Part shown: positions 20,201-55,700 of the stretch, piece after piece
Layout of the letters: every line of letters starts with the position of its first letter
Numbering within the stretch: position 1 is the first letter of the stretch
NCBI GenBank assembly: GCA_965113315.1
Contig: OZ220365.1
Origin: Podarcis vaucheri
Taxonomy: Eukaryota
Reading direction: 5' to 3' (one strand)
DNA: 64,000 nt
The notes under the pieces: model-generated
The model's database searches: none
The model's input: only the letters and a program-made list of their open reading frames with translations
Told to the model about the DNA's origin: nothing
Made by a program: the position numbers and the translations under genes

Positions 20201-23200
20201 CACATCCCTAAATGGATTGGGACCAGGATATCTGAAGGACCACTGTCGTCCATGTGATCCTCCCTCCTATGCATTCACCTCCCTCCTATGCATTCAGGGA
20301 GTCCTACTATGTGTCATGCTGAGATCTTTGTATTTTGTAGAGCTTTCAGTATGGTCCAGTGTCTTTTATCCAGTGATACAAGCTTTCAGAGAAAATTAGA
20401 AATGGAATTGTTTCTGGAAAACTTTCACATGCAAATTAGAGTAAGTTGCACCATGATTTTTTCCTGATGCTTCAGAGAGTGATCTTAATTTTCATGTTTA
20501 TTTTTCTTGTATGTAAGAAACAAAGCTAAAAACTTGGAAACTGCCTAATAATGAATCTGCAGTTGACACCCATTCATTGTTACTAATGAACTTACGTAAT
20601 ATAAAATTTTCTGCAGAAAAATAAAGCACTAAAGTTTCTCCGCATAGCTGAATGAGGAATCAAAGCCTGTTGATGAGCAGCGCTATTTGCAATCCTTGTG
20701 TGGTGCTTTGAAGTCACTTATTCTTCTCCCCATCCCCCCAACAACAGACAACCTTTGACAGGCGGGGTAGGAGAGCCCACCTGTCAATCACCTCTCCTCA
20801 TTATGACATCAGATGATTGACAGGTGTGTTATCCTACCCATCAGCTAAACATAGGCCATGGGGAGGGGGCTGATATCTGATCCGGCAGAGCAAAATTCTC
20901 CCCCACTCCTGTTGTAGAGCATAACTTCAGGTTAATAGCAGCATCCCTTTTTAATTTGACTCTCTCTTATTTACAGCTGTCTCCAATCTAGATGAAGAGA
21001 GCAGATGGACAGTCCATTACACTGCACCCTGGCATCAACAAGAGAACGTGTTTCTACCCACCTCAAGGCCACCCTGTGTAGAGGATCTGCACCGCCAAGC
21101 CAAGCTGAACCTGAAGTCGGTACTAAGAGGTAGGAAGTTGACAATAATAACACACCATATCATTACAGATTTTTTTCTTTAGCAGTAAAACTATGTGCCT
21201 GCTTGCATCTGCCTACTTTCACAGCCCTGTGACCTCTTGTACTTTTATCAAGGAACTAAACAAGAGGGAAGAAAACATCACACCAGTGTTTCAGATGATT
21301 ATACTCTTCCTGCTGTAAAGTGGTCTCCATAAAACTTATTTATGCAACATGCAGCTCTAGTTGGTTTCAGCCATACACAATAATATCATCACAAGTTCCA
21401 ACTGTAGCTGAAGAGGAGGCTGGAAAAGAAAGTCTGAAGAGCCATCCTAGAAATGAGATTGAACCCATCCTGCTGATTACAAGTTTCAGGACAATCTCTG
21501 ATATATGGAACATGTGGAATCAAACAAAACAGGTTAAACTTGACATTGGAATATTCTGATTTTAGAGTTCAGGTGTAAAGTTCTGAACAAATATATTAGG
21601 TCAGTAAATATATATTTGTCAGAGTGCATACTGCTTCTGTCCTTTCTTCTCAAAAGTGGGTTTTTTTATTTTAAATCATACGTTTTTGGGTGATATGGAG
21701 GTATGTTCAATTGGGCCACATAGAGGGGGAGAGGTTGCCAATGACAGCTTCCCTTTGAGGCAAGATGGCTAATCAATAACCATAGAAACAATGTAAAATA
21801 CAAGATAATAGCTAGCTTTTATGCTTGTTCCTGCTTGCATAAGGTTTTAATTTTAACCTTGCTGCAATTTCCCATTTAATAAAAATGCAGCAGAGGTCGG
21901 TTTCAGACCTATATATGTAAAATTTGCAGGCTCTTTTGTTTTCAGTAAATATTGATTCTCCATCATCAGTTCATTCATATATACCATTGCTTTTGTTGCT
22001 GCAGGGCCCCAGTATCTGTGGTGATTCATTAGTTATCCCAGCTTATTGGCGCACTGGTTTTGTAGACTAAGGTTGGAGATGTGTTTCTATACTGTCCTGG
22101 TTCCAGACATAGCTTAGGAAGCAATGCTTTAAGTGTTTGAATTAAATCCCAGAAGACATCTGGTTAGCATGTAAAATAAACAAATTAAAAGATAAATCAG
22201 CAGACCTTCCTACATGTTTCCCTAATCTTATACAGAGAATAACATGTTATTGCTCAGGCTTTGTTTTTCCTATGATTCATTGGATCAATATGTTGATGAG
22301 AAATATGGGTCATCCCTCGCTGGTGGTTAATTTCTGCTGAGAAGATTACTTGTTTTATATATTAATCATATGTTCAATTAATGGCCTGTTAAGCAAAAGG
22401 GAACCATTTAATATGAGTAACAGTTTTAGCCCTGGATTTATGTTGATGCTGAGATGTGAAATTTATATCAATTCAGAATAATGAAATAAAAGATAGGCAA
22501 GAGGCAGCATGGTTAAGCAAGGCTGCCTTGTTTCCAAGGGAGAAAATAAAATCAAGACTGTTTGCTAGCGCTGGTAGCTATACCCATTTATTCTTTATGG
22601 TTTTTAACTATTTGAAGCCATTCACAGTTCATACGCACTTGGCTTTGGAAAATGTCTGTCTTTCAAATGCTCTTCTGAAGAATTGCGAGGAGTCCTATGC
22701 AATGAAAATCTTAAAGAATATATTTATACATAATAGTTGCTGGTTCCATGCTGAGAAATGGAATCTATTGAACTACTGTTGTGCATTTACTACAAAAGTA
22801 TTCTGCTGGCTGTGAAGTATGTAAGAAAAAAAAATTAACTAGATTCAATAGTTTTGACCTGCACAGTGTTAGAAACTGAGATTTGAAAGCTAGGAGCTAC
22901 CGTATTTTTTGCTCTATTGGACGCACTGGACCATAGGACACACTGGACCATAGGAGGGGGAGAACAGGAAAAAAATTTTTTTCTTGTTCTCCCCCTCTAA
23001 AACAAGGTGCGTTCTGTGCGTTCAAGGTGCGTTCACCCGAAGAGCCTTTGGGTTCCTTTCGACCTGCTCTTTGGGGCTGGTGGGGGGGGGAGCGCTGCTT
23101 TCCCCCACCGCCAGTCCAAAGAGCAGGTCAGGGAGCAACGGGAAGGCGCACTCCGCCTCCCCGCTGTCCCCCGAGCTTGTGGGACTGGTCTTTAAAATGG

Positions 23201-29898: not shown

Positions 29899-32800
29899 TA
29901 AACTATTCAGAATATGTGTATGTATGAATCATGGTAGCATCATGATATGATCTGTATTTTACAGATAAAATTTAATTTCTTGAAAATTGATGCTTAATAT
30001 ATTTTCCACTCTGTGCTCCTGACAGATTTTCTGGAAAGGTAAAAGTAACAGTTGGACTAGGCAGCTTAGCATGTTCATCCACATCTTGAAGATTTCATTT
30101 TTCCCTTATGTTCCAGCGTCTGTTGCTCTTTAGCTGTATTTCATTGAATATCAATTAAGGAAGAAGACAGGGATTGGGAAACAGCTACAGTAATGATAAG
30201 GATTTTTATCTAATTTTAAATTCAGGGCATGTTGTTTGGAAGTTTCATGGAAATATTTCAGTTGAATCAGTTTCTCAGCAATTCCAATTTATTCTGAAGA
30301 AGGCCGAGGATTGTTATTTTGATAAGTGTTTTGTTCTCCATTGGGGGGAAATGTTAGTTTTCTTCACCCCATGGAAGGAGGTTAGCTTAGTAGTCTTTGC
30401 CAAAGCTGCTTAGCAGATGGTGATTGTGTAGTGAGCAACATCCCTACTCAGATTCAAAGCATTTTATGGGGGTCTACCAGACTGGTGAATAAGACCCCTA
30501 TCGCTAGTGTTCTTCTCTCCCTATATCTCATGTTTCTAGCAATCTTCCACCTAAATGGTTCAGTAGACAGCCATCTGTCAATCTAGACCACAGTTTGTCC
30601 ATTTCTCTCCATCAATTTTGACAACTTCTGTTTTGAAATGAGTAAATGCACATGTGCCTTTTAGTACAGTGGTACCTCGCAAGACGAATGCCTCGCAAGA
30701 CGAAAAACGCGCAAGACGAAAGAGTTTTCCGTTTTTTGAGTCGTTCCGCAAGACAAATTTCCCTATGGGCTTGCTTCGCAAGATAAAACGTCTTGCGAGT
30801 TCTTGCAAGTTTGTTTCCTTTTTTTAAAAGCCGCTAAGCCGTTAATAGCCGCTAAGCTGCTAATAGCCGCTAAGCTGCTAATAGCCGTGCTTCGCAAGAC
30901 GAAAAAACCGCAAGACGAAGAAACTCGCGGAACGGATTAATTTCGTCTTGCGAGGCACCACTGTATAGCACATTCCCTGTTACCCTGTGTAAAGTAAATA
31001 TCGTTTTACTTTCTAAATTGTTCAAAGAAAAAGAGAGTTTGAGTTCGTACTGTGTTTCCTTAAGTCTATTTTTCACAAAGTGATATAAATGTGTCTACTG
31101 ATGACATGCAATATATTAACATTTGATAGTTTTGAATCTAGGACTACTTTATAGTCTAGAAACTATAGATAATTACATTTTGGAGTAGAGAGATGTATGG
31201 GTAACAATGGAGAGGTCACACTTAGTCTCCTGGGTTCCAAAATGGCTCAAGACTCTGGCGTGTCTACTTCTGTCAGAGAATCAAGATTGAAGCAGAACAG
31301 CAGACGATGACATTTAATGTGTATTATATGCATAATTTAGGTATTAAATATGTCCGTTAAAATATTCTGGTTTTTTAATGATAAAACCCAGAAATGTCCT
31401 TTAACCGGAAGGGACGGGCAGCGATTAAATGTGGGGTTCCAGTCAGCCTAAACAAATATGGAATTTGGAGCAGAATTTAATATTCAGAGAATGTCAGCAT
31501 GCATTTTTATATGTAACACGTTTGTTGTTCATTCAGCTGCAAAGGTGGGTTTGAAAGTGTGGGCCTGATGGAAACTCTGAAGCCAGAGTTAGATTTGAAA
31601 ATGTTGTCGGGGAGATAAAATACATTCATTCATCCTCAGGACTGGAAAAAAGACAGAATTTATTAAAATAGCAAAACATATTCATAGAACCATAGATCGG
31701 GAGAATTGGAAGGGACCATGAAGTCATCTGTTCCATCATCCTGCACTGTAGGAATCCTTTGCCCAACATGATTCCTCAAACCCACAACCTTGAGATACAC
31801 AATTTCCTGTTCTACCAACGTGAGCTAGCCCAGCACTTAGTTGATTGATGGGATTTACTTTGGCCAAAAGTCCTTTTCTATTCTTGAAGCAGAATTACGG
31901 TCACATTTTTTCTTTTTCTTTTCGGCAAAGAATATAAGGCTGTGGTAGCTGGTTGTGTGTTTTGGTCTCACACCACTTTGTGCCAGTTCTCTTGGGAACT
32001 TTGTCACTTCTTTAGCTGAATGTGTCCCAAACATTGGTGGGTGGATGAAGTTGTATATAAATGAACAAATTTGACACTGGCACAATTTCACCCCTGTGCT
32101 TTAGTCTGCATATGTTGGTTTGTTGAGGCCCATTTTCCACCAGGAAGGGGCAGTCTGCCAGGGGCCACATGCCTATATGATAGATGGAGACAGAGCTGAA
32201 GATAGGAACATAAGGAACCGCCTTTCATGGAGTCAGACCATCTAGCTCAGTGTTGTCTGAATGGCAGTGGTTCACCAAGGTTTCAGATTGGGGATATTCC
32301 CAGCTCTATCTGGAGATATGTACCACGAATTGAATTTAGGACCTATGAATTTGGGAACTTGAGCTATGACCCATTCTGAAGATGGATGGATTGAAAGTGG
32401 AAAGCAGGATATAGAATACCCTGCTTCAGTTTTCATCACGGCTACCTCAAATTAGAATTCCAACTCTTATGCAGATTTACTCAGAAGGAAGCTCACTGGG
32501 TTTGAATGGGTTAATCTCAAATAAGCATACAGATGCAGGGAACAGATGAATACAACTACTGTTCTGGAAAGCAAGCAAAACTAATTCCTTTCTGACTTAG
32601 GCTTCTGCCATGAGCTTGCATGCAGTGAGTTTGTTTCGAGACAGTGGGAGTTGGGAATGGAACTTCTTTCCCCAAACCATACAATCAGAAAGAAAGTTTT
32701 AAAATTTGAATATAATATTGCTCCTTTGAAAGGAGGAGAAAATACTTTAAAAGGCCAGGAATAGTGTAGCCATAGGAGGTTTTAGGGGTCACATGAATTG

Positions 32801-35800
32801 AGTTTGGGTACCACATGTTGCCTGCAGGCTGCCTACCTTGGTATCTAGCAACCAAAACACTAATGTTTATTTTTTATTTTTTTCCTCTTCATGATGTACA
32901 GAATGTGACAAGCTGCGAAGGGATGGCTATCGAAGTTCTCAATACTATTCTCAGGGCCCAACTTTCTCATCTTCTTCCAGTGCAATCTGCGGAAGTCACC
33001 ATGATGACTATGAAGAAATTGAACAAAAGGTGAGGTACCAAGCGCCCTAGGAAGTAATGTAGTATAATGCACATATAAGCCAAAATTAAATCAACATAAA
33101 ACTATAGAAGTGCAAAATAGAACTGTGCAAAATATTTAGAAAAATATGGGCCTTTAAAGCTATGCTGTTTTCAAAAACACCACCTATAGTGTGGTTCAAC
33201 TCAAAGAAGAAAATTGCAATGCAAACATCTCTGGCAGGCAGAAGTACAGATTTTGAAACCGGTTATATCAGTGCTTGCTGCTTTCATGAGCAAATAGAAA
33301 ATAAAGCCATTATCCCTTTGTGAGCACTAGCTTTGTTTTTTAGTTTTTTAAAGTGTTCATAGTTCACCTTACATTTTATTTCAAGCAAGCTTGATGTGTT
33401 CAAAGTGGACTTAGTGCAGTTCGGTTCTCTGGAAGGAAATAAACGTTGCACTATGTCAGATGTTTTGTCGGTGCAAGCATTGCAGCTTGCCTGATGGACT
33501 GTTCCCCACTCTCTCTCCTTGCCCCATGTGCTATCCTGGGGGTTCTCCTGCCCCTGCACCAATTTCAGGGACCTGAGAGGGAGGAAAACCAGAGTGTGCA
33601 GGCAGAAGTCCTTGTGTGAGCGTCCCCTGACAGAACTCAGTAGCTGAATCCTTCCCTCTGTTCTAATTGTGCATTTGTTTCTTCATTGTGATTTCTGTAT
33701 AGTATCCACTTGAGTAATACTTGCCCCTTGTGCAGGAATCTGTTATGTGCAGTGGCGTAGTGTGGGGGGTGCAGGGGGGGCCGGCTGCACCGGGCGCAAC
33801 ATCCGGGGGGGGCACTCGCAGCTCTCTGCCCCTACCGGGTTAGGGGGTGCAAATTACTTGCCTTGCCCCGGGTGCTGACAACCCACGCTATGCCACTGGT
33901 TATGTGCACTGTGTTTCATAGCTATCAGCTCCTTATCCACCATCTTCTTTCCTTTCTCAGGATCAGCCATGAACTCATAGCATATGTATGTGCTCAACCA
34001 CTGGCCCTGTTCTCATACATGTGTGTACAATATATAATAATACTTACCTACCTACCTTAAAGGGTTATTGCAAAGATACTGAAATCCTTGAACAGTAAAG
34101 ACAGCACTGTTCGGATGGGAAGTTGTTGTTGTTTGCACCCTTCTAGTTTATTTAATCTTGAAGTTAAAGGCTGAATAATGATACTTAAAAAATAAACAAA
34201 CACAGATGTGATGCATTTTCCAATAGCCTCCTCACTCCACTCCTTCCCTGTTGGTCTTCAACCATGAGTGTGTGCACTTCAATATCCCACCTGGAGAGGG
34301 TGGGATTCATGCATGAAGATCTTGAGATGGTATTATTTACTTTCAAGTAAATGTATTTAGAACTGTGTTGGTTTAAATCCAAAAAAATTATCTTAGCTGG
34401 TTTTTGGACTATGAATTTTTTAGTATTTATAACAGAAAATATAGTGCAATGTCCTCAGCAAGTCAGTATTTCTTAATAGTCCTGCAATTTTGTTCCTGTG
34501 TAGGAGAAATTATTACATAGGTGTTATTTGCACAATCAGTGAAATATTAAAATTGACTCAATAAGTGGCATTATGAGGAGATTATAGAACCGCTGAGGGC
34601 TAATTTATAGTGAAATACTACCTAATATTATAAGCAAAATGGCATTTTCCTTGAAAACTACCTTCCCATAAAAATTATCTTAGAGTGATATTCCACTTTT
34701 CTTTATTTTGATATGGTATGTACTGGTGGATATCAGTCCTCAGTGAAAGACACAGTGAGATGTACTGTTGGGTGAGGCTGTTGTTATGGTCCCTCTAGAA
34801 CTAATATTGTGGAGAAGGTGGGAAGCCTGAAGCTGAGGGAGGTTTTGCAGAGAAGTAACTTGGTATCTGAGAATATTTGTTCAAAAAACAGCAGTAATAT
34901 ATTTAGGAGAAGTGTTAGCCTCAAGGGTTGGAGAGGGGAGGTTCCTTCCTTCTCTGTGGCTCCTTCCTGAGATGGTCCCAGAAGGGGGTCTTTCAGGGTT
35001 CTTGTTGCCCCAGAACTTCAAAGGAAGGGGAAAATGAGCATTTGATGTAAAAGTCTAACGTGCAGTCCCTTTGCAAGTCCAGATCAGGATGCAGATGGTA
35101 TGAAATACATCTACTTAGGACCCTAGAAATTTTCTGGAAATCAGATCAGATGGTTAATATGATCGACTTCATGCATATTCCTGTAATTTGGTTCATACTG
35201 CCCTCAGATACTTCTGTGGGGACAGTTTGGGGTGGAGCCATCTTTTTAATGTGATAAATGGCCCTAATTCATGGCAGCATTTCTGACACCCTGTACTGAA
35301 GCATATTTCCCTTTTGTGAGTCCACTGAATTGGCTGGTTTATTATTATTATTATTATTATTATTAAAACCCTTTGATTAAAACACGACAAACTAGTATGA
35401 TATTTTCTCTCTTTCTCTTCATCACTTAAGCATGTTTTCCTTGCATGGAAAATTGATGTCTTCAGATAGCAACTCCTCTCTGCTTTCTGAAATTATGTTT
35501 ATCTTGTTGCTACGTTTACTGTGTCTGTTGTGTCTTTTTATGTGTGTGTTTTTTTCATTCTCTTTTCTTTGCCACTCATTCACTTTCTTTTTTCTCTCAC
35601 TCAACAGTCTAGTCTGTTAGACTGCCTCCCTCAGTCTTGCCTTAGTGCCTGCTGTTGTTTGATTCCATGGAAGATCAAGGTATCTGGCTCCAAAATGGGA
35701 TCATCCAGCTGTTATGTATATATACAGCTTGATGTTATTGTGAATATTCTCAAATCTTACTTTTAAATTTTCACCTATTGTTGGTTTCACGTTTTCAAGG

Positions 35801-38800
35801 TAAATCTTGTACTAACATTGTGTGCTTCTATCCTTATCTCAGTAGTTGTCAATCTAGAACCCTCAGTTTGTATATTTAATGGACTAACTCCTTTTTTACT
35901 GCTCATACTTTGTTAATGTTTTCTGTTCTCTGGGAACAGTTTACAAACTGTTATAAATGTTCTTGTAATTTGGATTGTTGTGCTGTTTTACAATAATTTA
36001 TTCCAAATCAAACAAACTATATATTGATTTATATATGAAATGGAAAACAAAACATCTTAGCATTGAATCTGAGAGTGAATGTGAGTGTCTATTAGGTTCC
36101 TCTTAACTCACATGTTTTACGACAGGGGTGGCTACCTCCCAGTTCAAGGGCCTAATCCAGCCCCCCCCCCCATTTTTGTCTGCCCCTCAAGACTCCATCA
36201 ACTTTTGCAATGGTTGCAAATGTAAACTTTTTTTAAAAGTAAACACAGCATTTGGATGAATGGCATCCAGGGTCTAGATGTGGATGCAAGTTATCCCCAC
36301 TCTGATAATGAGATTTATCATTTGATGAGTGGGAAGAGGATGATAATCCCTGTTTACTGGCTTCAGCAACCAAAATGCCACTAATCTCATTTCTGAACAT
36401 TCCTTTTTCAATCCTTACTATATGCTTTCCTCTACTGAAAACAAATAATGTTTTTGTTCCACCGTGTTCTATTAAGAAATCTCAGATGACAATCTTAAAA
36501 GATCAGTTTACTGAAATGAAATCTGAAACTTTTAATAACTGCTATTATATTTATTGAGCAATCCAACCATCTCAGTATAACATTGGGAAAAATAATATTT
36601 AGTAATACAATTAAGCATGAAAACCAAACTGTGCTACTCTTTGTAATACATAAGAATAATATTAATTTCGCTTCCTATTCATTCTCATTCCTTTTCTTCT
36701 AACACTAATCTTTGGACTGAGTTTTAAACCACCACAAATCTGCATACTATTTGGTTTCTTTATTATAGGCTTTGTTGGAGCAATGAATTCAAGTTGCTGC
36801 TTATTCTGAAGAGTTGTTATTTCCTTTGGGACTTGTGCCTGCCTTTGAAATAGTCATTTAAGAACATATTGTTACACACCACCCCAGTCTTCACAGCAGT
36901 GCAAGATTCCAGGGGTTACAGCGGAGACTGTGGTGTCTTTATGATATATGGTTCATTTACAACATGAACCTACAATGGAGGAACTCCCAGGATTACACTC
37001 CAAAGCGGGTCCTTTTCCTCCCATGGGTGTAACGTTGGATTCAAACTGCCCACCCCATTCTGCTCTAACCCACACTTTCCAGCTTTGAAACTGCTTTCTA
37101 AATGCAACTATTTCCCCTTCAGCTTACATAACCCCTCACTGCTGTTCTGAAACTTCCTCCTCACCACTCTGGCATTGTCTTTTGTTAACTACCCAGAGCC
37201 CAGAGTGGGGGGGTTCACCCCTCTCCATGACTTTCTTGATGAGTCATCATTCTGTTTTTGCTTGCTTAATGGCTAGGCCATTCACAGTCTCACCTGGCTA
37301 TTTTGATATAAATCCAAGCACCCAAAAACTCTGATACCCAAAGACCTATAACAATATTCAAAGAGTGGAGTCTTCATTCCCAGCTGTTTGTTGGGGAATG
37401 CAGCCAGAACACAGGAACTCTCTGGGGCAAAACTAGGGGCTGTGGCAGGGTGGGGGGCCGCATGGTGGGATGCATCCATTGCAAGAAGTTAGTACAGTCG
37501 TACCTTGGTTCTCGAGCGCCTTGCTACTAGTACGTTTTGGCTCCCAGATGCAAAAACCCGGAAGTAAGTGTTCTGGTTTCCGAACATTTTTTGGAAGTCG
37601 AACATCCGACACGGTTTCCGCTTGAGTGCTGAAAGCTCCTGCAGCCAATTGGAAGCTGCACCTTGGTTTTCAAACACTTTCGGAAGTTGAACAGACTTCC
37701 GGAACGGATTATGTTCGAGAACCAAGGCACATGCACACCTTTCAGACATACACAGGTCTTAGAAATTCCAGAGCTGATGTTTTCAGGATGTTGACTGGTA
37801 GATAGTGTCAAAGCCCTACCTCAGCTGCCCCAGCCATAAACATCTACAATTTTATGATTCTGTAATTAATTTCACCCTTGGCTGAGATACTTTTGAAAGG
37901 TTGTTTTCCATGAGGGCTGAGAATAGGGCCAGGTGTGAGTAACCAAGCGATCCCAGGACCTGGAGGATTTTTTAATGGATTAAAGCAGGCTTTGCCAACC
38001 TGGTGCCCTCCAGATGTTTTGGCCTACAACTCACATTAGCCCCAGTCAGCACAGCCATTTGGCTGGGGCTGGTGGGAGACATCTGGAGAGCACCCAGCTG
38101 TGCACCAGAGAAGGAAACAATTGCTGCTTGGATTGTATCAAAATGTTTGTATGCACTAAAACTTGGAACAACATTTGGACAGTGTTTTGATCAGAGTAGC
38201 TGATCTGACTATTTAAATCAGGCATAGGCGAACTCGGCCCTCCAGATGTTTTGGGACTAACAACTTCCATCATCCCAGACCGCTGGTCCTGTTAGCTACG
38301 GATGGTGGGAGTTGAAGTCCCAAAAGTCTGGAGGGCCGAGTTTGCCTATGCCTGATTTAAATGGTCTATTATTTATTGGCCATCGGATCAGCTGATTTAT
38401 TTTCCCATGTGTCGAAATGGTGAATTTTGTTTGTTTTGTATAACAAGGATTCAGACATAAATTTACCTGTCTGCCTATGTGTGTGATTTGTTTTGCTTCA
38501 TGCCTCACAATTGCTTTTAAAATATGCTTTATTTGCAGTTTCCTTGAAAAAGAAGGAAAGTTATATAGTATACATTTATGTCTCTGTCTCTTGTCATGTT
38601 CGAAGAGCCCCTGGTGACTGGCTAATGGCAGCTGGGTTTCCAAATACAATACACTGGGTCAACATAACATGACAGTTATTCATTTTGACAATGTCAACCA
38701 ACCAGATAAAAAGTAGGTTACTGGGGCTTATCACACAGCACCATGCTTGAAGTATTACTCCCTTGGCACCTGAGCCTAGAGCAAGCTTTTTTTCATGTGT

Positions 38801-41800
38801 AATAGTAAGATAAACAAAAGCCACACACTAATGAACCATTGCATATCATTTTGGTTTGCATTTCTATCTCTGTGACTCAGACCTTTTAAAAACTGATTTG
38901 GTGGGGTCACACTTGCAAATTTCCCCTTTGTACAAAGGAAGAAGATGGCACAGAAGGTTTCTTATCCTAATACTAAGGTCAGGGATACCAAAAGAGGGGC
39001 CATTTCCCCTAAGATTTGGTCATTGCATTGAAGAATCTCTTCTGACATTTCAGTTGTAAATGTTTTACAAGATTTGTAAATCCATTCTTTCATATTTGGG
39101 ATTTTTAAAAATCCCATCAAAGTAGCCCTAGAGCATATTTTTAAAGAGTTTGGGCAACTAGAAGCACTGTATTTTATAGCACTGCTAAAACTCCTACTGA
39201 AAATAGTAGAGTTCTTGGTATATCATTAACAGACCAGTATTAATTCCTATGTTTTATACGTAAATTTAGTATATGGTTTTGCATAATGTCCCTTTTTTTC
39301 CAATGAGAAAAAGAGTTATGTACAAGTTTAATAATTAGATTTTATGCATGTTTACTCATAAGTATTCTGTATTCAGTAGTACTTGCTCCCAGGTAAGTGT
39401 GCATAGGATTGCCTGTCACATTGAATTCAATTCCTTAACATGTGCTTAATTGGGTTATACGTTTATTGATTTTTAAAAAAAACACGTATTGGATGCTGGA
39501 TGAAATCGGTTCAGTATTTGTAATTACTGCTAAACAGGATGTACAAACCTTTCCTTATGTACAAATTGGAACAAGGTCTGTCTAATTCATATTTTGCTAG
39601 ATATAGCCAAGGCAAAAGCATCACAACTATTTTGAGTGCTTTAATTTATATTTGAAAGATAAATAAGTAAGGTAAATATATTTGCACTGAATTTACAGCG
39701 TACTTTTTTTTAATAGTGTTCGACCCCTTCTCCTGAGGAGGAGAAGCTCATTAGCATCAAGAGACCCAAAACACCAGTTTCAAATGAATTCTCTGATATC
39801 AACACTCAAACAAATTGGACCAAATCACTTCCATTGCCAACCCCGGAGGAGAAAATGCGACAACAGGCTCAAGCAGTCCAAACTGATGTTATACCTATTA
39901 ACGTAACTGGTAGGCTTTTAATTTTGTTTCTGTGTGGTGAGAAAGAGCAAGAGATCTCAATTGGTTATTGGTTTTTATTTTGTCTGAAAATACGTTTTGC
40001 AAACTGTTGTACTGATGAAACTTAAAATGAGAGGCTGATTAGATTGAAAGTACTGGTTAAATTACTACTACACTTTTCAAGAGCAGGGTTCTTTGCAGGA
40101 ATTATGAAGAATATCGGGAAGAGCACACATTCAGCCTTAGATCTGAAAAGGATTCTTGTGGCATGGTCAAATATATACTGAGATTTAAAAAGAGCACAAA
40201 ACCCAAAATGTTTTCTACAATAACTTTCTCTTAAGATTTTAGGATCTCTCTGCTTTTCAGTCTATGAATAATATTAAGAAACTTGCCCAAGCCAGCAGAT
40301 TTACGTGCTCATCTGTGGCAAAAAATATTGTTGTATGGAATATTCTTCAGGACCTTTGAGATGAAACCTATGTTAACCTCTTTCTCGGTCACAACGAAAT
40401 GCTCTGTGTTAGCTTCAAAGATGAAGTGTTCATATTAGAAATGGTTTGCTGCTATATTAAGCTTAAAAGGTTTCAAGAAGCCTTAGATAAGATCCACTTA
40501 CAGTATGTGAATATCCGCCTCTTTTGTACAATGACTGTACTTCAGTTATCCACTGGAGGAGGAAAGTGAAATGCAGAACTGTACTCCTGTTCCATTAACA
40601 AAGAAGATTTGTCTTTCTCCTGCAGCATGGTTGTTCTTCACTGGTGCAAAAATGACCCCAAGGGCCATGGCACAATTACTAAATTACAACCACATTGCCA
40701 CATTCCAGCTGGTCTGAGGCACAAGAAGTTAACTTCAGTTATGCCGCATAGACTTCCATTGTGCTTTAGGCTTTCAATTAGATATTTTTGATTACATTGT
40801 TAAGGCAGCTGACTTTATTTCATTAATAATCACTTAACTTGGGCACGCCTTTCCCTTATGTGATTGCTAATAACCACTTAGCGCTGGCATCCATCTTATT
40901 TTAGCAAGATTTTCAGTATAAAACAGTTGTCTGGGATAAATAAGAAGCTCGTGAAAGTAATTAGAAATGCAAAATGAAAAGATATTATTGAATGCCACAA
41001 CTTAAAAGAGAAATGGTTTTGCACATTTAATTCATTACACAAATGAACAAACTGGGGTTCCTCCCAGTCAAGGTTGCTGCCTTTCAATTGCATAGATGTT
41101 AAAAGACAGAGAAATAATCAGTATGCTTAATCATAAGAGTGCAGTATATTTAGAAAAGTATGCAGTTTAATCTTCTTTAACTCTCAAAGTATGTAAAAAC
41201 AAAAGGTTGGACATGAGATGGGTGAAAGGTGGGCAATTCAATGGATATACTGAAGCTGAGCCATATTGCTTTACACTTTAGAAACTGAGGTTGCATTGTG
41301 AGCTCAATTGAACACAGTGTGACTTCCTTTTGAATGAATATATGTAAGACAAAATTTGCAGTGAACTATCCTCTTTGATATGTACTTAGCTGGGAGAGGA
41401 AAAGGGGGAAAAATATATTTTAGTTCTAACCATATCTTTAAATTGATGTAAGCGCTAGAAATCATGTATTTGTATACTTTCTTCTCCCCTCTCCTTTTTT
41501 TGAAATGGCAAGATAATATTTTTGGCTGTCTAAACCAGCAGTAGTAGATTGGGCTATTCGCCGCAATAAAATATGGATGTGTCTGAAATAAAATATTAAC
41601 CCTAGATGTACTTTTTAATAAATCAAGTGCCTTTTTAAAAAGATTAATTAATAATGAACACAGCCCACAACCTTTCACTTGGCTGCACAACAGATGAGAC
41701 CTGCTTTGGTTTCATTTGGCAGCGCTCTTTCAGTCGGACAGATTGTAGTATTGTAAATCTGGCTAGTAACCTGAAGGTGCTGGGGCATTGCATTAATCTG

Positions 41801-43704: not shown

Positions 43705-46700
43705 CATCAATTCATATACTGCTTACATGCCAAAATTACTTTAAAGACTAAATATAGCCAGGGTGCAGTTCTGTGACACTGAAGTCTATATAGAGAATTT
43801 ATGTTCAATAAATGTTACTGGCATTTGGCATGGCTCTTTGGTACCAACCAAAAAGAGACAGTGAGACCTCTGCCAGGGTTTCACAGTATGATGGAGCTGT
43901 TTCCATCTGCATCAGTCTCTCTCTGTCTCTTTCTCTCTCTCCCCCCCCAATATAATGTTGTATTTAAATATAGTAAATTTTCAGAGGTAACAGACATTAA
44001 ATTTTGGCTAACCTGAAAGTCAGAACATTGTCTAGACTCAGTCATGTTTGTTATTTAATATTTTAATTTTTCTCCCACTGTTCCAAGGCTGTTCACAACA
44101 CTGCTAACATTATAAGTTCACTGCAAAATACAGCAGTGCTTACTGAAACACTGTTTCAGTTCAAATTGTTTGTTCATTTTAAAAATACCTAAGACATTCA
44201 GATATTATAAAACTTCATCGTAGTCATATAATAAATAATCTGCAATCAGTTCCTCTGAAGTTTCTAATGCAGGGGAAAGTAGCCAGATTTCTTATGACTG
44301 TCGGTATAAAAATTTTGGATGCAGAGGTATCATCTTACTTTACTTATGCTTAGAGTCTGGGAGTTTCAAAAAACTAAAACACACATATAAGGGCCTACGT
44401 TTGGTGTTGAACAAAAGAGGCAGTCTAGGGATGTTCTTAGTGTATGTCCACCCTGCTGCTTAACAGCAGCAAGAAACCAAACTTTTTGTGTTGTCATCCC
44501 AGTTCTGCCAATAGAGGTTCATCAGGCATATTCTGTTCTAACTTTTGAAACACCTCCTGAAAACTTTTCCATGCTACCGAGCTAATGCAGTCAATTAAGA
44601 AAATATATTTAAATGTTAAATGATTTGTCATTTTCCAAATTAACAGCTTACAACAGTGGAAAAAAGAGAACCACAGTCCCTCAGAAAATATCTTTGTAAT
44701 AGTTCTGATGTTTTTATGAATAGTGATATACAATTTTTAAGTAAATAAATGAGCAATGAGGCCTCAAACCTCTGACATCATTCCAGGAACCCACTTATCC
44801 AAACTGACCTCCACACCTTACATCCACTTCCATTAGCTTCATATCTGCCTCATGTCCATTAATTTAAATTAAACCTCCAATTAAGTATATTTAGGATCGT
44901 CGCTGAAGTCATTAGCCATGCCATGCCATAAGAAAATGAATAAATACTTATTCAGTACATTTCTCAAAAACAAGAGCATAAATTCTCTCTCCCCCATTCC
45001 TCAAAGTTCATAAGAAGGTAAGCTGGGACATAGTGTAACTATAAATGTCCAATATTGACATTAATAGCTCACTGATATGTTTAGATTAAATGAAGATTTG
45101 GTTTGATGAGACAAATGTATTTGATAGGAGCATGTAATCCGTTCCATTATAAAGCCTTAAAGTGACAGTATGCTGTATCTTTTCCTTCTATGTATATCCA
45201 CTCTGTATGACTGAGCTAACATCATATATTAATGCCTTTTCTTCATTTCTATAATAAGCAAGTGGAAGAAAGTGCATGATGTCAGCGTGCTTGAAAGTAA
45301 TGGTGCTTTGCTTGTTCTACTGTACATCAGGGGAGAATTTTGACCGCCAAGCCAGCATACGGAGGTCTCTAATTTACACAGATACTGTGGTAAGGCGGCC
45401 GAAGAAAGTGAAAAGGAGAAAGACTATTACAGGAGTCCCTGACAACATCCAAAGAGAGCTAGGTATGGCTCATCAGAACTGTATTCCATTACAATTAATA
45501 ATTATCTTGCTTACTGTGACTAAACTCATAACATTTACCCCACGCTCATGAAGTCAATACAGTCTGATAGCCTATTAAAAGTTAAAATGAATGTATGCCT
45601 GACCACTAGGAAAGAATAAATAGTGTATGCTTAAACCGATCATTTTGCCCGCCTGGAAATTAAAGTTCCATCTTTACAAACAAACAAACAAACAAACAAA
45701 CAAACAAACAAACAAACTGAATTTACTGAATGCCATGCAAAGCTGCAATTTTCTGAAATCATGTACTGGGACAGTAAAAATCTATAAGAATTTTAGGGTT
45801 GTTTTCAGGAGGGTTTTTTATTCCCTTGGTCTTAAAGATATATCTTACAATTACTGGTAAATTTGAGCACGTCAGTCTCACATTTCCTTCATTCTTCACT
45901 GAAGATTGGATTTTAGTAGGAGGAGTACTGCTGTCTAAAATTGGTTCCAGAATCTCATTAAAAACTTCCCCCTTTACCATCTGATCATAAGGCTTATCAG
46001 TCAAATGGCTCAAACATTTGTGAAATGCTATAGGAGAGTCCATATTTGAACATAAATATTCACTATGCAATTATCATATTTGAGGTCTTCTGGGTTTGTC
46101 ATTTGTTTAACCATAAATAACTTTCGTCCCCAGCCATTCCTTCTTGGCAAACATCAATGTAATGGGCATAAGCTAAGGCCCTTTTTAGGCTAGACCCTTG
46201 TTTGTATTCTGTCACTTCAATTTTTTTTCATTCCTAACAACAACAAAAGTGTAGATAGCTTTTATTCTCTTCATAGCCAACTTCAGACAATGATCTTCCT
46301 GCTTGTTCACTTGAATGCTTAGTAGACATTCTAGGCTCCCTGAAATCCTGCTTGAGGCATTTAGTTTGCATATTCAAGTAGCTGTGGCATGGCTGTTTTG
46401 AAATCCATGTATTTGTGGCCATCTCCCAACATGGAAGCTTTGATTTTACACCATAGCACCACAAACCCACATTTAGGAAGGCTTGTGCTGACATACTGAA
46501 TTGCTATGCAGAAATTACTTGACACACCCACGCACAGTGCAAGTTACAGTGTTAATCAAATGTCTTAGAAGCTTTATTGGTGTCTGCAATGGTGCCGGTG
46601 AAATGCTGCCCTCATTTGGCATGGAGTCATGCCAGTTGCATGCAACTTGATGGCAGTTCCATTGGGTTGTGGGACTTAAAGGAACTTCCTATACATTTCC

Positions 46701-49700: not shown

Positions 49701-52700
49701 TTCCTGGAATCCCATGGTGCTTTTGAATGGAAGGTGCAGCAGTCAAGACATAGTTTGCAAAGAACAAGGACTGATACACACTTTGCTTGTTTTTTATTTT
49801 CTTCATTTTTCACACTGGGGATAGGGTAATATATTATATATATGTAACATAAATAAGCTCCTGTACATTGTGACTTAAATTATGGTCTGCTGAGTGCTAC
49901 AATAGCTGTAGCTGCTATTATTTAAAGTGAAGTGTGCAGGCAGCCTAGTAGGATAGTATTGATTGTTCCCAGTTGGCCTTTAGCCTGTTGGTTAGGTAAT
50001 AACAGCTATTCTTGTCTATCAGGGGTTTTGTTTGTTTTTTATCTGAGTGACGTGACTGGAGAGTAGTCCTAGTTTGAATGTAAACAGACCCAGGTTCTTA
50101 TTTATATTTGAAACAATGAAGCATATTTGAAACATCCAAGGAAACAACTTTTTGATACATGTTTTGTTAATGAACACAGGAGCTTAAATGTGAAATCTTG
50201 ATGTGTATAATAATTGTTTTATTTTAACTTCCAACAGTTGGCACTGGTAAAAACGACTTCCGTGGCCATTCATTATGCGTCCCTGACCACTATTCCACGC
50301 TAGGAAGGCTTGATAGCTATCACTCTTCCATGCAGCAGTCTGACACCAAGGACTCCGGCTGTCAGACGGAGGAAGTCAAAGTGGTGCCACCTTCAGTCAG
50401 GCGAATACGTGCCCAGAAAGGTCAAGGAATTGCAGCCCAGATGTCACAGTTGTCCAGTTCTTCTGGAAACATGTCTGTGATGAGTGATTCCGCTGGGGTT
50501 GTGTTTGCCTCCCGCCTAAACAATGACCTGGGTTTTCATAGTCTACCTCGGTCTGGGGCAAGGGTGTCCCTACAGTTCCTGGAACGTAGACATAGCCTGT
50601 CTAAGTCAACAGAAGGTGGAGCACTGTCACACCACATAAGCAAACTGCAAGTGGATGATAGCATAGACCACATGAGGAACAACAGTAGGACAGGTATGCT
50701 TCAAAGGCCAAAGTCCCAAGAGGTAAAGGGCTCTGAGAGTGACCAAACAGAAAGTCTAGCATGCATGGTCTCTCCACATAGTATGTATTCAACCAGCATT
50801 ATACCAAATGCAACCCTATCATCCTCTTCAGAGGTTATTGTGATTCACACCACACAGATTGCGGGCGCGATGGATAGTAAAATCACCCACCCTTCTTCAT
50901 ATACAAAACCTAGAGACAATCTTGTTGTCAACAGCATGGTAGGCACAAAAGATCAACAGCATTCCTCTAGTGGGACCTGGAGCGAGACCAGTTCAACACA
51001 TCACTCGCGTTCCTCAGACACTGCTGTTTCATCGAATGCTGCAATGGTGCTCAGTCTTGGAGATTCAGGAGTCTCTCTCACCGGTGCAGGAGCTGTGGAA
51101 AATGCCCCTCAAAGTATGACCTACAGCAGTAGGAATAATCTCAATTTTCCAATGCACTCTCAGGACAGTGACAGTAGGAGTGAATCAAATTACTCTGTTG
51201 ACAAAACACAGAGCCAGGTTCAGAACAGCACAGAGCACTGTGGTTTGAAGCGCTCTGGAAAGGAAGAGGTGTTGTTACACAAACTAAACTGTGCCACTCC
51301 AGGCTGCTCCACGCCTGTGAGCAACTTGAGTACCAGCAGCCTTGAAAGAGTCTCTGCCAAAGAAGACTCAAGCTCTTTATATTCTGTGGACCATGATGGC
51401 TATTACACTTCCATGCACATGGACTCGGGACTCAAGTCTGGCAAAACTTGCAATAGCAATAACGGCTTTGGAAACCCCAGGCACAGTGTCATTAATGTGT
51501 TTGATGGCACCGAGAAGAAATCTCTGGGAGACTTGTCGAATTACAGCGACAAATCCCTCTCACGAAGCATATCCTTTAAAAAGGCAAAGAAACCGCCTCT
51601 GCCACCATCCCGAACAGACTCTCTTAGAAGGATCCCCAAGAAGAAAACTCAGTCCAATGGGCAGGTATTGGATGACATGTTGATTGCTAGCCTCCAACAC
51701 TCCCTACAGTTGAACCTCAAGTGCAAAAATGGCAGCTCACCATCTCAAAGCCCCTGCAGTGATTATGATGACCCTTGGGTGCTACGCTCTCGTAGTCAGA
51801 GCTCGGTGAGCGCCAGTAGCAGCATGATGTCTGGAACAGGCCTGAACATGTACTCCATCTGTACTGTCACACCCTCCCAGAGTGAGACAAGCAGCATCAG
51901 GTCAGAGTATGCTGACCAGTGGGGCTACTACAGCGATTGTCCTGGGATGCCGGAGGATCAGCTGAAATCCCCAGTAGTTCATTCGGCTAATGCTGGACCC
52001 AGGCTAAATGATTATAACGTCAGCCGCCTTAATGATGGGTCAAGGGCTTCTACACCACAGGTGCCCAGCGGGTTGGCCAAACCAAAGACCACTTCTCCAG
52101 AAAAGCCACATAGGGTTACATCACCATCTAGTGGGTATTCTAGCCAATCCAACACACCCACAGCAGTTACACCAGTGCCTGTCATTCTGAAATCTATGTC
52201 AACAGGAAACGGGAAACCCAAGATGAAACCTAAAGTGCCTGAAAGAAAGTCATCCCTTCTGTCTTCAGTTTCAGTGTCTTCCTCCTCCACATCCCTCTCT
52301 TCTAATACATCTGCTGAAGGGAGTGGGAGTGTGAAGAAATCTGACTCTGGCCCAAGCTTCCCTCTGGTTTCGTCTCCAGACTCTTCTGAGTACCTTCTTC
52401 CACCACCACCACCTCCCTCAACAGATGTCATGGATCTGCCGCCTCCCCCTGGATCTCCCAACTTCCCACCGCCTCCACCAGAAGCGGTTATAAACATATC
52501 GTTTTCTCAAAGTATCCCATGGTTTAATTACCTACCGCAAGACCCTTCGTTGGATCATTTCTCTCCCTCTTCACCTCCTGTGCCATCTCCTCCCCTTCCA
52601 CCTCCTGTCCCTTCTTCAGTTCCTCCACCAGCACCCCCCTTGGACCCCAAACTCACAAAAGGTGCATACAAAAATGCACCATGTTCTTTCAAGAAATATA

Positions 52701-55700
52701 ATCAGGAAGGTTCTTCTCACAGTACAATAAAGAGAGCTTCCTTGAAAAAGGAGGATCCCGCCAGGCCTTCAATGCCTCTAGTAACCACCCAAGCACTGCA
52801 AATGGTACAGCTGAGGTCCGTGAAGAAAACTGTGGTGTCAGAGGTTGAACAGCCAGGTGAATCTACTTCTGACATAAATTCTCAGGAAAAATCAACTGAT
52901 GTGCTTTCAGGACAGCTGCCTATAAAACCAGGTGTAACAGTAGGACACTGCGACAGCCTGGAAGAAGGTGAAGTGAAACCCCATGGTGCTTTTGACAATA
53001 CCTTTGTTTACAGTCCTAATCAGAGATCTTATCCAGGACTCTGTGGTAACTATGAACTTTCGAGTGGTGCAGTGCCTGGAAATGCAGGCAGTCTAGCTAA
53101 TTCCTTTGCCAGTGATTTACCACCAGCCAGTGTTGAAGAAGCAGCACAGGGTTTTTGCTCTGATCTTGCAAGCTCATCTCTTGAGGGACAGCCAGGATGT
53201 CTCAACAAGCCTCAGGGTGTATCGCCAAACAAGAAGCCGCCACCTGTTTCAAAGAAACCCAAACTGTTCCTGATTGTGCCACCCCCACAACCCGATGTTA
53301 CAGCAGAAAAAATAGCTGGAGTGGGTGAAACAGTCAGAATCGCTCCAGGGGATGCTGCCATTGCACAGTACAGCCAGGCTGAGGATTATCCTACAGATGG
53401 ACTCTGCTCCTATGAAATGGACGCTGGCAGCCTGGTTCCAGGAGGAGGAGCTGCAGGTTCCACCTCCTGTGAGACACTGGAAGTCAGCGTTTCTGCGCTG
53501 CAGCCCAAGCAGGAGGAGCAGCCTTGCTTGTGCGAACGAAGCAGTTCCAACAGAATTGGAGACAGTGTCTCTAGAGGAGACAGGCATGCATCTCAAGGGG
53601 ATGAAAGTGGTAAGTCTGTTTTCTATTTTCATCCAGTATCTTTAGTGACTAGACCTATTTGGGAGTAGGATAGGGAGGGCTGCAGCACTGGCATCAGTGT
53701 AACACTCTCGGTGCAAATGCATGCAGGTCCTAAGGGAAATAATAGAACTTGGGCTAATGGTGTGTAAAGAATCTGCACTGCCTTCTTTATTTAAGGGAAA
53801 CAATTGTCAAGGGGGATTTCTCAACCAAATCTCTGTTGTGTTGATTTTTAAACTGAGACAATAATGATGGCCATGAGGTGGGGATTAGGGAATCCAGAAA
53901 TGTCAGTGTTGTGTTCCTTGTAAGCAAATAAATAGCTTTTCACAGAATGTAGTTACTCAAAATAATTTTGTTGTTGCCATCAGTAAAAAGGCAGAAGCAT
54001 GGCTGTGTTGTGTATTTTTAGGGAAATTTACGGTCTTTATTGCCCTGTTGGCTACTTAACTCTTAATTCTTCAGATATTGCGAGTTTATAATCCCACATA
54101 ATTTTCTTACTTACTGCATTTTAGCTGAGGGGTTTGAATCAGATGCAGCAAACAGCTTTTTACTGCAAAGCCCTAGTTATGGAGAAGACAGTGAGGTGGT
54201 GGCAGTGCCAACCAGACCAAGGACTACTGAGGATCTTTTTGCAGCCATTCACAGGTATTGTTTAATTGACTTATTTGTGTTGCTTTATCCATTATCCCTT
54301 AAGAGTTTTAAATATATCTTACATAATATGTAATGCTAATTATTATTATTTTATTTTTCAAAGAAATTCGCTTTAGTTTCTGGTAATACGTAGTTAAAAT
54401 AGATTATTCATATATGCACCTTTTATTGCTTTGCAGTCAACTAATTCTGAAACTAAACTTTGCTGGCAGCAAAATCAAGTTTGGTAAAATTGTCAGCCTC
54501 TGGCCCTTGTGTGAATGTCAAGTGATCCCTTGTTTGTATTGTACTGTTTCTCTCAACTTTGCTTGATTTAACATATACTATTGCTTTCTTTGTGTATCTT
54601 TTTGTTTTCATTTCCTCTACCCTCCATTCTTTCCCCCCCTCTTCTCTGCTGATTATATGGTGCAGTTTGGGACAGAGGCTCAACTCTAATGCTTCATGGC
54701 AAGCTTGGCTTAAACTGGCAAGTAAACATGATCTATCCGTCATATGGCAAAACATATGACAGTAGCTGGATTATAGATTGCCATAATCCAGTTGAAGATG
54801 AGCTATTTCTGTGACACACTGATCTGTTGTTTCGAATGTGCAATACAGACTAACCCCAATCATTCTCTCCTGATTAAAGGAAGGAAGTTCAATGGATGAA
54901 CACATTTCACAAGGCTAAACAAATGCAAATGATTCTCTACAAATAATTATGGTTCTTTAGATGATATCTCTGATTACAGATCTTCAGAATGCAACCCATT
55001 TTTAAAAATACTTTAAGATACCTTTAGCTAGAAGGGGCAGACAGGAAATGCCCTAAAAAGAAAGTGACATATCTTGAATTGGAATATCTAATGTGTGTTA
55101 CTGGTGCCACCTTGTGGAGATTTTTCTTTCTCCACGAATTGGAACATCTTTGGGGAGTGTAATTGAAAGTGGCACAAATATGTTCTCATTATGTTATGTG
55201 AATAGAGGTTGGGAATGCTCTGTGTTGGGAATTTTGGATCATGTTTATATATTGTACAGTTTATATATTGTAGTGTTAAATATTGCAGGGTAGAAAAGTT
55301 TTGCTTCTAGGATGATATCCTTTCATGGCAAACAGTTGTGCATTTCAGAGTAACGTGTTTCCCACTACCCTACATATTTCCCATTACTAAACATATATAT
55401 AAACCAAGACTGAAGACACCACTCAACTTGTTCCAGAAGGCACTGAAAGGAAGTGAATTGCAATATGGCACAGGAGTCTGCTATATTTAGAGAAAAGTAA
55501 CAATTCCCACCACACATGGCAAGTCCATGGATATAACTAAATAACTCTTGGATTCAAGAGAAACATTCATCTTTGTGTGGGAAAAGAGCAGTGTGTATAT
55601 GTGAGACACAGATTGCATTTGTGAGTAGGGGAAGAGTGTTTACATTCTTCTCTCACCTTTCCTCCCTCAGTCTTCCTTGTAAAAGAACAAATAAGCCCTG

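Follow-up and report, generated by a model that had tools for sequence, protein, structure and literature searches.

The 72-nucleotide (nt) segment at positions 35608-35679 in intron 3 of a lizard NHSL1 gene is almost certainly a genuine, evolutionarily conserved alternative cassette exon that lies between exons 3 and 4, a judgement drawn from the comparison of reptile and bird proteins. It was studied within a 64,000-nt stretch of DNA from Podarcis vaucheri (assembly GCA_965113315.1, contig OZ220365.1), here called the window. Comparative evidence demonstrates the existence of the segment as a conserved coding unit across Sauropsida, and the 24-residue insert that it encodes, with its fixed cysteines, its Pro-Trp pair, and its constant length, appears clearly to be under selection. 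The exon itself is not a discovery: annotated isoforms of many sauropsids contain it, and a paralogous gene has a published exon in the corresponding position. The functional hypothesis considered below, in which the cysteines of the insert would carry a lipid anchor, is new only insofar as nothing published on it was found.

The segment and its two neighbouring exons lie in the window as follows.

32902-33029, + strand: NHSL1 exon 3, 128 nt, ending in phase 0 on a codon boundary (..EIEQK)
35608-35679, + strand: predicted 72-nt alternative cassette exon ("exon 3a"), phase 0-0, with borders caacag / gtatct; 24 residues, stop-free, with a Cys cluster
39717-39909, + strand: NHSL1 exon 4, 193 nt, opening CSTPSPEEEK..

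Exon 3 ends on a codon boundary and intron 3 is therefore in phase 0; with phase-0 junctions at 33029 and 39717, inclusion of the cassette keeps the reading frame. A local frame check of the joined exon 3, cassette, and exon 4 gave a translation that is in frame throughout. The original prediction, made from the letters of the window without database searches, had described a stop-free 72-nt segment with these borders, 24 codons, and a preserved frame, all of which was confirmed at 35608-35679. Its assignment of the segment to NHSL1, as a cassette exon in a phase-0 intron 3, is borne out by annotated NHSL1 isoforms of squamates, turtles, and birds, which have this insert at the corresponding junction.

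Conservation of the insert across sauropsids

A word search with the big exon of NHSL1 returned 120 reptile and bird NHSL1 proteins, each of which was cut between conserved anchors in exons 3 and 4. Most of these had no insert at that point; in 22, an insert of 24 residues was located precisely where exons 3 and 4 meet. In every case it sits in phase 0 between ..EIEQK and CS.PSPEE.., and its identity to the cassette peptide of the window is high.

Varanus komodoensis: 24 of 24 residues identical
Anolis carolinensis and A. sagrei: 23 of 24 identical
Turtles (Chelonoidis, Gopherus, Caretta) and many birds: 17 of 24 identical, the remaining changes mostly conservative

Among the annotated isoforms with the insert are Varanus komodoensis X3, Anolis carolinensis X2, Caretta caretta X5-X7, and Haliaeetus albicilla X1, which have in common with the cassette of the window the gene, the junction, and the 24-residue length, at 71-100% identity. 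By these comparisons, the annotated sauropsid insert is the orthologous exon of the cassette: the intron, junction, and phase are the same, the length is the same, the peptide is recognizable, and splice sites (by a rough scoring matrix) stand at its borders.

Further proteins were found by searches aimed at the insert itself. One word search, with a 40-residue region around the turtle cassette (125 candidates), brought in about 100 more species of birds; another, with a region of that length around the Varanus cassette, where the 3 candidates were cluster representatives, gave only Varanus and the two Anolis. With so few candidates (125 and 3), the blank outside turtles and birds in the one search and outside Varanus and Anolis in the other means little. 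The resulting set of 116 insert-bearing proteins comprises 33 variants, and in 115 of them the insert is exactly 24 residues long, the single 25-residue match being an end effect of the search pattern. The pattern can be written SSLL-D-C-x2-Q-S-C-x-S-x-C-C-x-L-x-P-W-x2-K, and S1, S2, L3, L4, C6, C11, C15, C16, P20, W21, and K24 are invariant in all 116 proteins. The five-cysteine patch that had been predicted is thus present as such in squamates, but only four of its cysteines are conserved; position 17 is occupied by cysteine in squamates alone, the other groups having Asn, Ser, or His there.

The conservation of the cassette can be set beside that of the big exon of the same gene. Between the lizard and an eagle the identity is 71% for the cassette and 62% for the big exon, and between the lizard and Varanus it is 100% and 73%, respectively. 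Identity of this order over the lizard-bird divergence argues that the cassette is not an unused intronic segment. In raw sequence data, three sampled 31-mers of the cassette were present in 20 sequencing runs, under 7 organism labels and in 10 studies. In a contig from a relative, the differences listed (which leave out those near contig ends) all fell in the upstream intron, with none in the cassette.

Other searches added little to this comparison. An exhaustive search of cluster representatives with a 30-residue cassette query found no annotated protein, only unnamed open reading frames (ORFs) that read through the cassette and one unrelated repeat protein. The latter (P0237, 459 residues, with about 7 tandem repeats of the form ..DSIMDCVPQALFS..) matched the cassette query at E = 3e-6 and was taken as a chance match boosted by its repeats. 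Evidently, the representatives of NHSL1 in 50%-identity clusters lack the cassette, so that this search is silent on mammals, amphibians, fish, NHS, and NHSL2. No usable match was obtained from the ESM Atlas, and Pfam gave a single family-wide NHS match that is uninformative for the cassette.

Splice signals and intron flanks

The cassette is bordered by an acceptor and a donor of different quality, and the elements that were located around it are listed here.

35470-35607, + strand: pyrimidine/TG-rich tract, free of AG up to the CAG of the 3' splice site (AG at 35606-35607)
35575-35583, + strand: candidate conventional branch points CTCAT and TTCAC, whose adenines (35578 and 35582) lie 30 and 26 nt upstream of the cassette (yUnAy match only)
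35680-35685, + strand: weak 5' splice site AAG/GTATCT, without G at +5
35519-35607, + strand: upstream flank apparently conserved with birds (ORFs P0236, P0238-P0245), and to about 35420 with another squamate
35680-35776, + strand: downstream flank of about 95 nt with apparent conservation in birds and in another squamate; motifs such as ..SSC.. and SLMLL/LQLDV reappear there, in frames that are shifted

Splice sites were scored with a crude position weight matrix (PWM) built from consensus frequencies, and the scores are rough. On this scale the cassette acceptor reaches 8.1, the second best in the NHSL1 gene, and the donor 4.8, compared with 6.6-11.4 for exons 2 to 6. The predicted absence of AG from 35470 to 35605 was confirmed; the + strand of the window has about 4250 runs free of AG, and this one, of 136 nt, ranks second in length. 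The longest such run, 54523-54663 (141 nt), lies in the intron after exon 7. A zone of this kind had been read as the mark of a distant branch point, a conclusion that the sequence does not force, because yUnAy matches stand 30 and 26 nt upstream of the cassette; a long AG-free zone need not imply a distant branch point.

A view of the flanks is provided by four short unnamed ORFs, located on Logan contigs that measure 1.3-13 kb, which read through intron, cassette, and intron; three are of bird type and one is of squamate type. They were compared as translations with the three frames of the window, not by DNA alignment, so that the conservation of individual motifs is unreadable in this way. 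In this translated comparison, upstream similarity spans about 90 nt for birds and about 190 nt for the contig of squamate type, which together with the downstream flank suggests that some 90 nt of intron are conserved to either side of the cassette. Regulated alternative exons typically lie between conserved stretches of intron. A strong acceptor with its polypyrimidine tract, a weak donor, and apparently conserved flanks make up the usual anatomy of a regulated, mostly skipped exon.

Some further observations concern the surroundings of the cassette. The predicted RNA fold around it did not differ from that of shuffled sequences (z = -0.97). A possible alternative donor, CAAG/GTAAAT, is present at 35799/35800, and reading on from the cassette meets a TAA stop at 35764-35766. 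An (ATT)n microsatellite lies at 35341-35367, about 240 nt upstream. Farther downstream in the intron, about 40 nt within 37995-38042 are matched by several unrelated contigs from one run, one of them at a depth of 42, with loose ends on both sides; this stretch is probably a fragment of a dispersed repeat.

Putative regulatory motifs

The motifs that had been proposed as binding sites for splicing regulators, TGCATG at 35442, a YCAY cluster, and ACTAAC at 35811 and 35883, are all present at those positions.

35442-35447, + strand: TGCATG (RBFOX-type hexamer), 166 nt upstream of the cassette
35811-35816 and 35883-35888, + strand: pair of ACTAAC, each followed by a pyrimidine tract and AG (35841-35842 and 35928-35929)

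Their assignment to RBFOX, NOVA, PTBP, and QKI is by motif match, and each of these factors is at most a candidate regulator. A second GCATG lies at 35430. TGCATG occurs 33 times in the window (0.52 per kb), and a copy within 170 nt of the cassette is therefore unremarkable. YCAY is found at 35555, 35572, 35576, 35580, and 35597; four of these fall within 35572-35597, where they overlap the likely branch points in the pyrimidine tract, so that the CTCAT/TTCAC candidates and the "NOVA" cluster occupy the same sequence. The two ACTAAC copies, 72 nt apart, make up two of the seven on the + strand of the window, a proximity that is unusual but was picked out post hoc. These sites look as much like decoys composed of a branch point and a 3' splice site as like QKI sites. 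The first, a perfect TACTAAC, precedes the AG at 35841-35842 by 26 nt. UGCAUG and YCAY elements that lie upstream of an exon mostly accompany repression and not inclusion, so that any "switch" could act in either direction.

Comparison with known optional exons

The window is, judged by its sequence, part of a lacertid lizard NHSL1 gene. The translation of its big exon (50238-53609, 3.4 kb) has 98.5% identity to NHSL1 of Podarcis muralis and 97% to that of Zootoca vivipara, and is identical to none. Alignment of full-length NHSL1 proteins of relatives to the window gave an exon map with the classical eight-exon layout, of which the following exons complete those given above.

20977-21129: NHSL1 exon 2, 153 nt, from the alignment of relatives
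45331-45462: NHSL1 exon 5, 132 nt, 44 residues (GENFDR...KEL)
50238-53609: NHSL1 exon 6 (the big exon), 3372 nt
54125-54254: NHSL1 exon 7, 130 nt
from 57544: NHSL1 exon 8

This layout allows comparison with the related genes. NHS, NHSL1, and NHSL2 have been described as having a "conserved genomic structure", and in NHS an in-frame optional exon, exon 3a, of 21-22 codons is found between exons 3 and 4 and is reported to be "variably expressed"; NHS-A and NHS-1A have 1630 and 1651 residues, respectively. The cassette occupies the same position in the shared gene structure (exons 3/4, eight-exon layout, the big exon being exon 6) and is similar in size, a correspondence by position only.

According to two preprints from the Krause laboratory, human NHSL1 has 25 GenBank isoforms, which differ in the choice among eight alternative first exons and in the omission of "exons 3 and/or 6". 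In the nomenclature given there, the human isoforms are numbered 1-4, and the standard or experimental complementary DNAs (cDNAs) exclude both optional exons. The bird and turtle isoform sets likewise contain exactly two optional internal exons, the cassette and the 132-nt exon 5, the same count as in human NHSL1; the numbering of human "exons 3 and 6", however, maps uncleanly onto the eight-exon structure found here. The equivalence of the cassette with one of the optional human exons is plausible and unproven. Exon 5 (45331-45462) of the window is thus one whose counterpart is also optional in the bird and turtle sets.

A possible lipid anchor and its alternatives

Inclusion of the cassette would add 24 residues in frame to the N-terminal part of NHSL1. 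We propose that its invariant cysteines may be S-acylated, which would provide a reversible lipid anchor for a protein of the lamellipodial edge; this proposal is tentative, and we put it a little short of an even chance. It is argued by analogy and from sequence context: C6, C11, and C15-C16 are flanked by L/I/V and followed by K, which fits the setting of S-palmitoylation sites. A precedent for the mechanism is the STREX insert of the BK channel, an alternatively spliced insert whose palmitoylated cysteines attach a cytosolic region to the membrane, as described in three reports (PMC2911306, PMC2963414, PMC3256903). The likeness is one of proposed mechanism only, the STREX protein and sequence being unrelated to the NHSL1 cassette.

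The position of such an anchor had been placed just after the WAVE-homology domain. The cassette does lie downstream of that domain, but exons 2 and 3 (about 95 residues) separate the two, and, according to the Krause-laboratory preprints, the domain is present only in NHSL1 isoforms that start with exon 1a.

Several points weigh against acylation. S-acylation has no strict consensus, and conserved cysteines could instead serve in metal binding or in protein contact. Literature searches found no link between NHSL1 and palmitoylation, no mention of the start of the cassette peptide, and no description of a function for the exon in any species. NHSL1 is a cytosolic lamellipodial protein that is located at the very edge of lamellipodia, and palmitoylation is not mentioned in the study that described this location (Law 2021).

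The main alternative accepts the cassette as a real conserved alternative exon and gives the cysteine cluster another role, in which it could bind a metal (Zn), respond to redox state, or serve as a hydrophobic motif for docking of a partner protein; we consider this alternative a strong contender that falls slightly under the halfway mark. Nearly all positions are conserved beyond the cysteines (SSLLD, QS, L18, P20-W21, and K24), a pattern closer to that of a specific surface for binding than to that of a loose patch for acylation, and the near-total conservation of these positions would fit a specific binding motif or a metal site equally well. The replacement of the fifth, squamate-specific cysteine by other residues in turtles and birds, together with the missing literature link to acylation, points in the same direction. 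On the other side, the C-x4-C-x3-CC spacing corresponds to no standard zinc-knuckle pattern, cytosolic cysteine clusters beside hydrophobic and basic residues are a common context of S-acylation, and NHSL1 acts at the membrane edge.

Chance, annotation, and use in lacertids

Exon-like features can arise by chance in long introns, and their frequency in the window was assessed by counting pseudo-exons of 30-300 nt, a multiple of three in length and stop-free, with both splice sites scoring at least as high as those of the cassette on the crude PWM. The 32 kb of internal introns held 2 (the cassette being one of them), the upstream 21 kb held 7, and the minus strand held 8 over its full length. 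An equally good in-frame pseudo-exon therefore occurs about once per 6-8 kb of the window, at which frequency about one is expected in the 6.7-kb intron 3. The exon-like features of the cassette by themselves are no more than chance would give, and it is conservation that decides.

The data from lacertids bear on the same question and count against the exon as far as they go, the RNA reads being too few to show its use. Three polyA RNA runs and one contig set, compared with 32800-38799, gave 2-4 reads per run, 90-95% alike and hence from a related species, and no splice junctions. One read and one 151-nt contig cross the border between upstream intron and cassette without a break, as unspliced RNA or DNA would. 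None of the 20 runs that hold the three sampled words of the cassette is recorded as RNA. The cassette is contained in 0 of 16 lacertid isoform models inspected (Zootoca, Lacerta agilis, and three Podarcis species), 15 of which were the members listed from a 51-member cluster; in this the lacertid models differ from the isoforms of other sauropsids. The exon is hidden, as had been claimed, in these 16 models, but not generally, being annotated in Varanus, Anolis, turtles, and many birds.

The absence of junction reads, at this depth of 2-4 reads per run, and of the cassette from the lacertid models would agree with a chance open segment between AG and GT, a multiple of three in length and never spliced in, as would the frequency of equally good pseudo-exons. 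Such a segment would not match the peptide of Varanus at 100% identity and those of birds at 71%, nor would it keep a fixed 24 codons and invariant Cys, Pro, and Trp residues at the same junction in 116 proteins. A chance origin is very improbable, and as a general explanation it is refuted by the conservation across sauropsids at the same junction. The spread of one wrong reference model into many genomes by homology projection is scarcely credible: many, and indeed most, bird entries are such projections ("NHSL1 protein, partial"), which speak for conservation of a coding unit and not for its expression, a further point against use, but projection cannot create an intact conserved 24-codon frame in more than 100 independent genomes. 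The cassette is also part of separate isoform models at NCBI for squamates, for turtles, and for birds, and independent Logan contigs contain the same sequence with apparently conserved flanks.

The preferred reading, of a conserved alternative exon, leaves room for differences in its use between lineages. We infer that the cassette is used in this lizard, and that its inclusion is restricted to certain tissues; a lineage-specific loss of its use in lacertids is possible.

Implications for NHSL1

For annotation, the visible lacertid NHSL1 models are without an exon that is present in the models of their relatives, and it should be added to them. For function, the cassette could represent an ancient splice-controlled lipid-anchor switch that dates back at least to the lizard-bird split and may be shared with NHS exon 3a and with one optional exon of human NHSL1; this wider proposal is doubtful, and on present evidence we regard it as unlikely. 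NHSL1 is emerging as a regulator of Scar/WAVE-Arp2/3 at the edge of the cell. The cDNAs specified in the Krause-laboratory preprints include neither of the optional internal exons. If the proposal is true, an acylated insert would tether NHSL1, including the WAVE-like complex of NHSL1-A, to the plasma membrane, and would alter the regulation of Arp2/3 at the lamellipodial edge.

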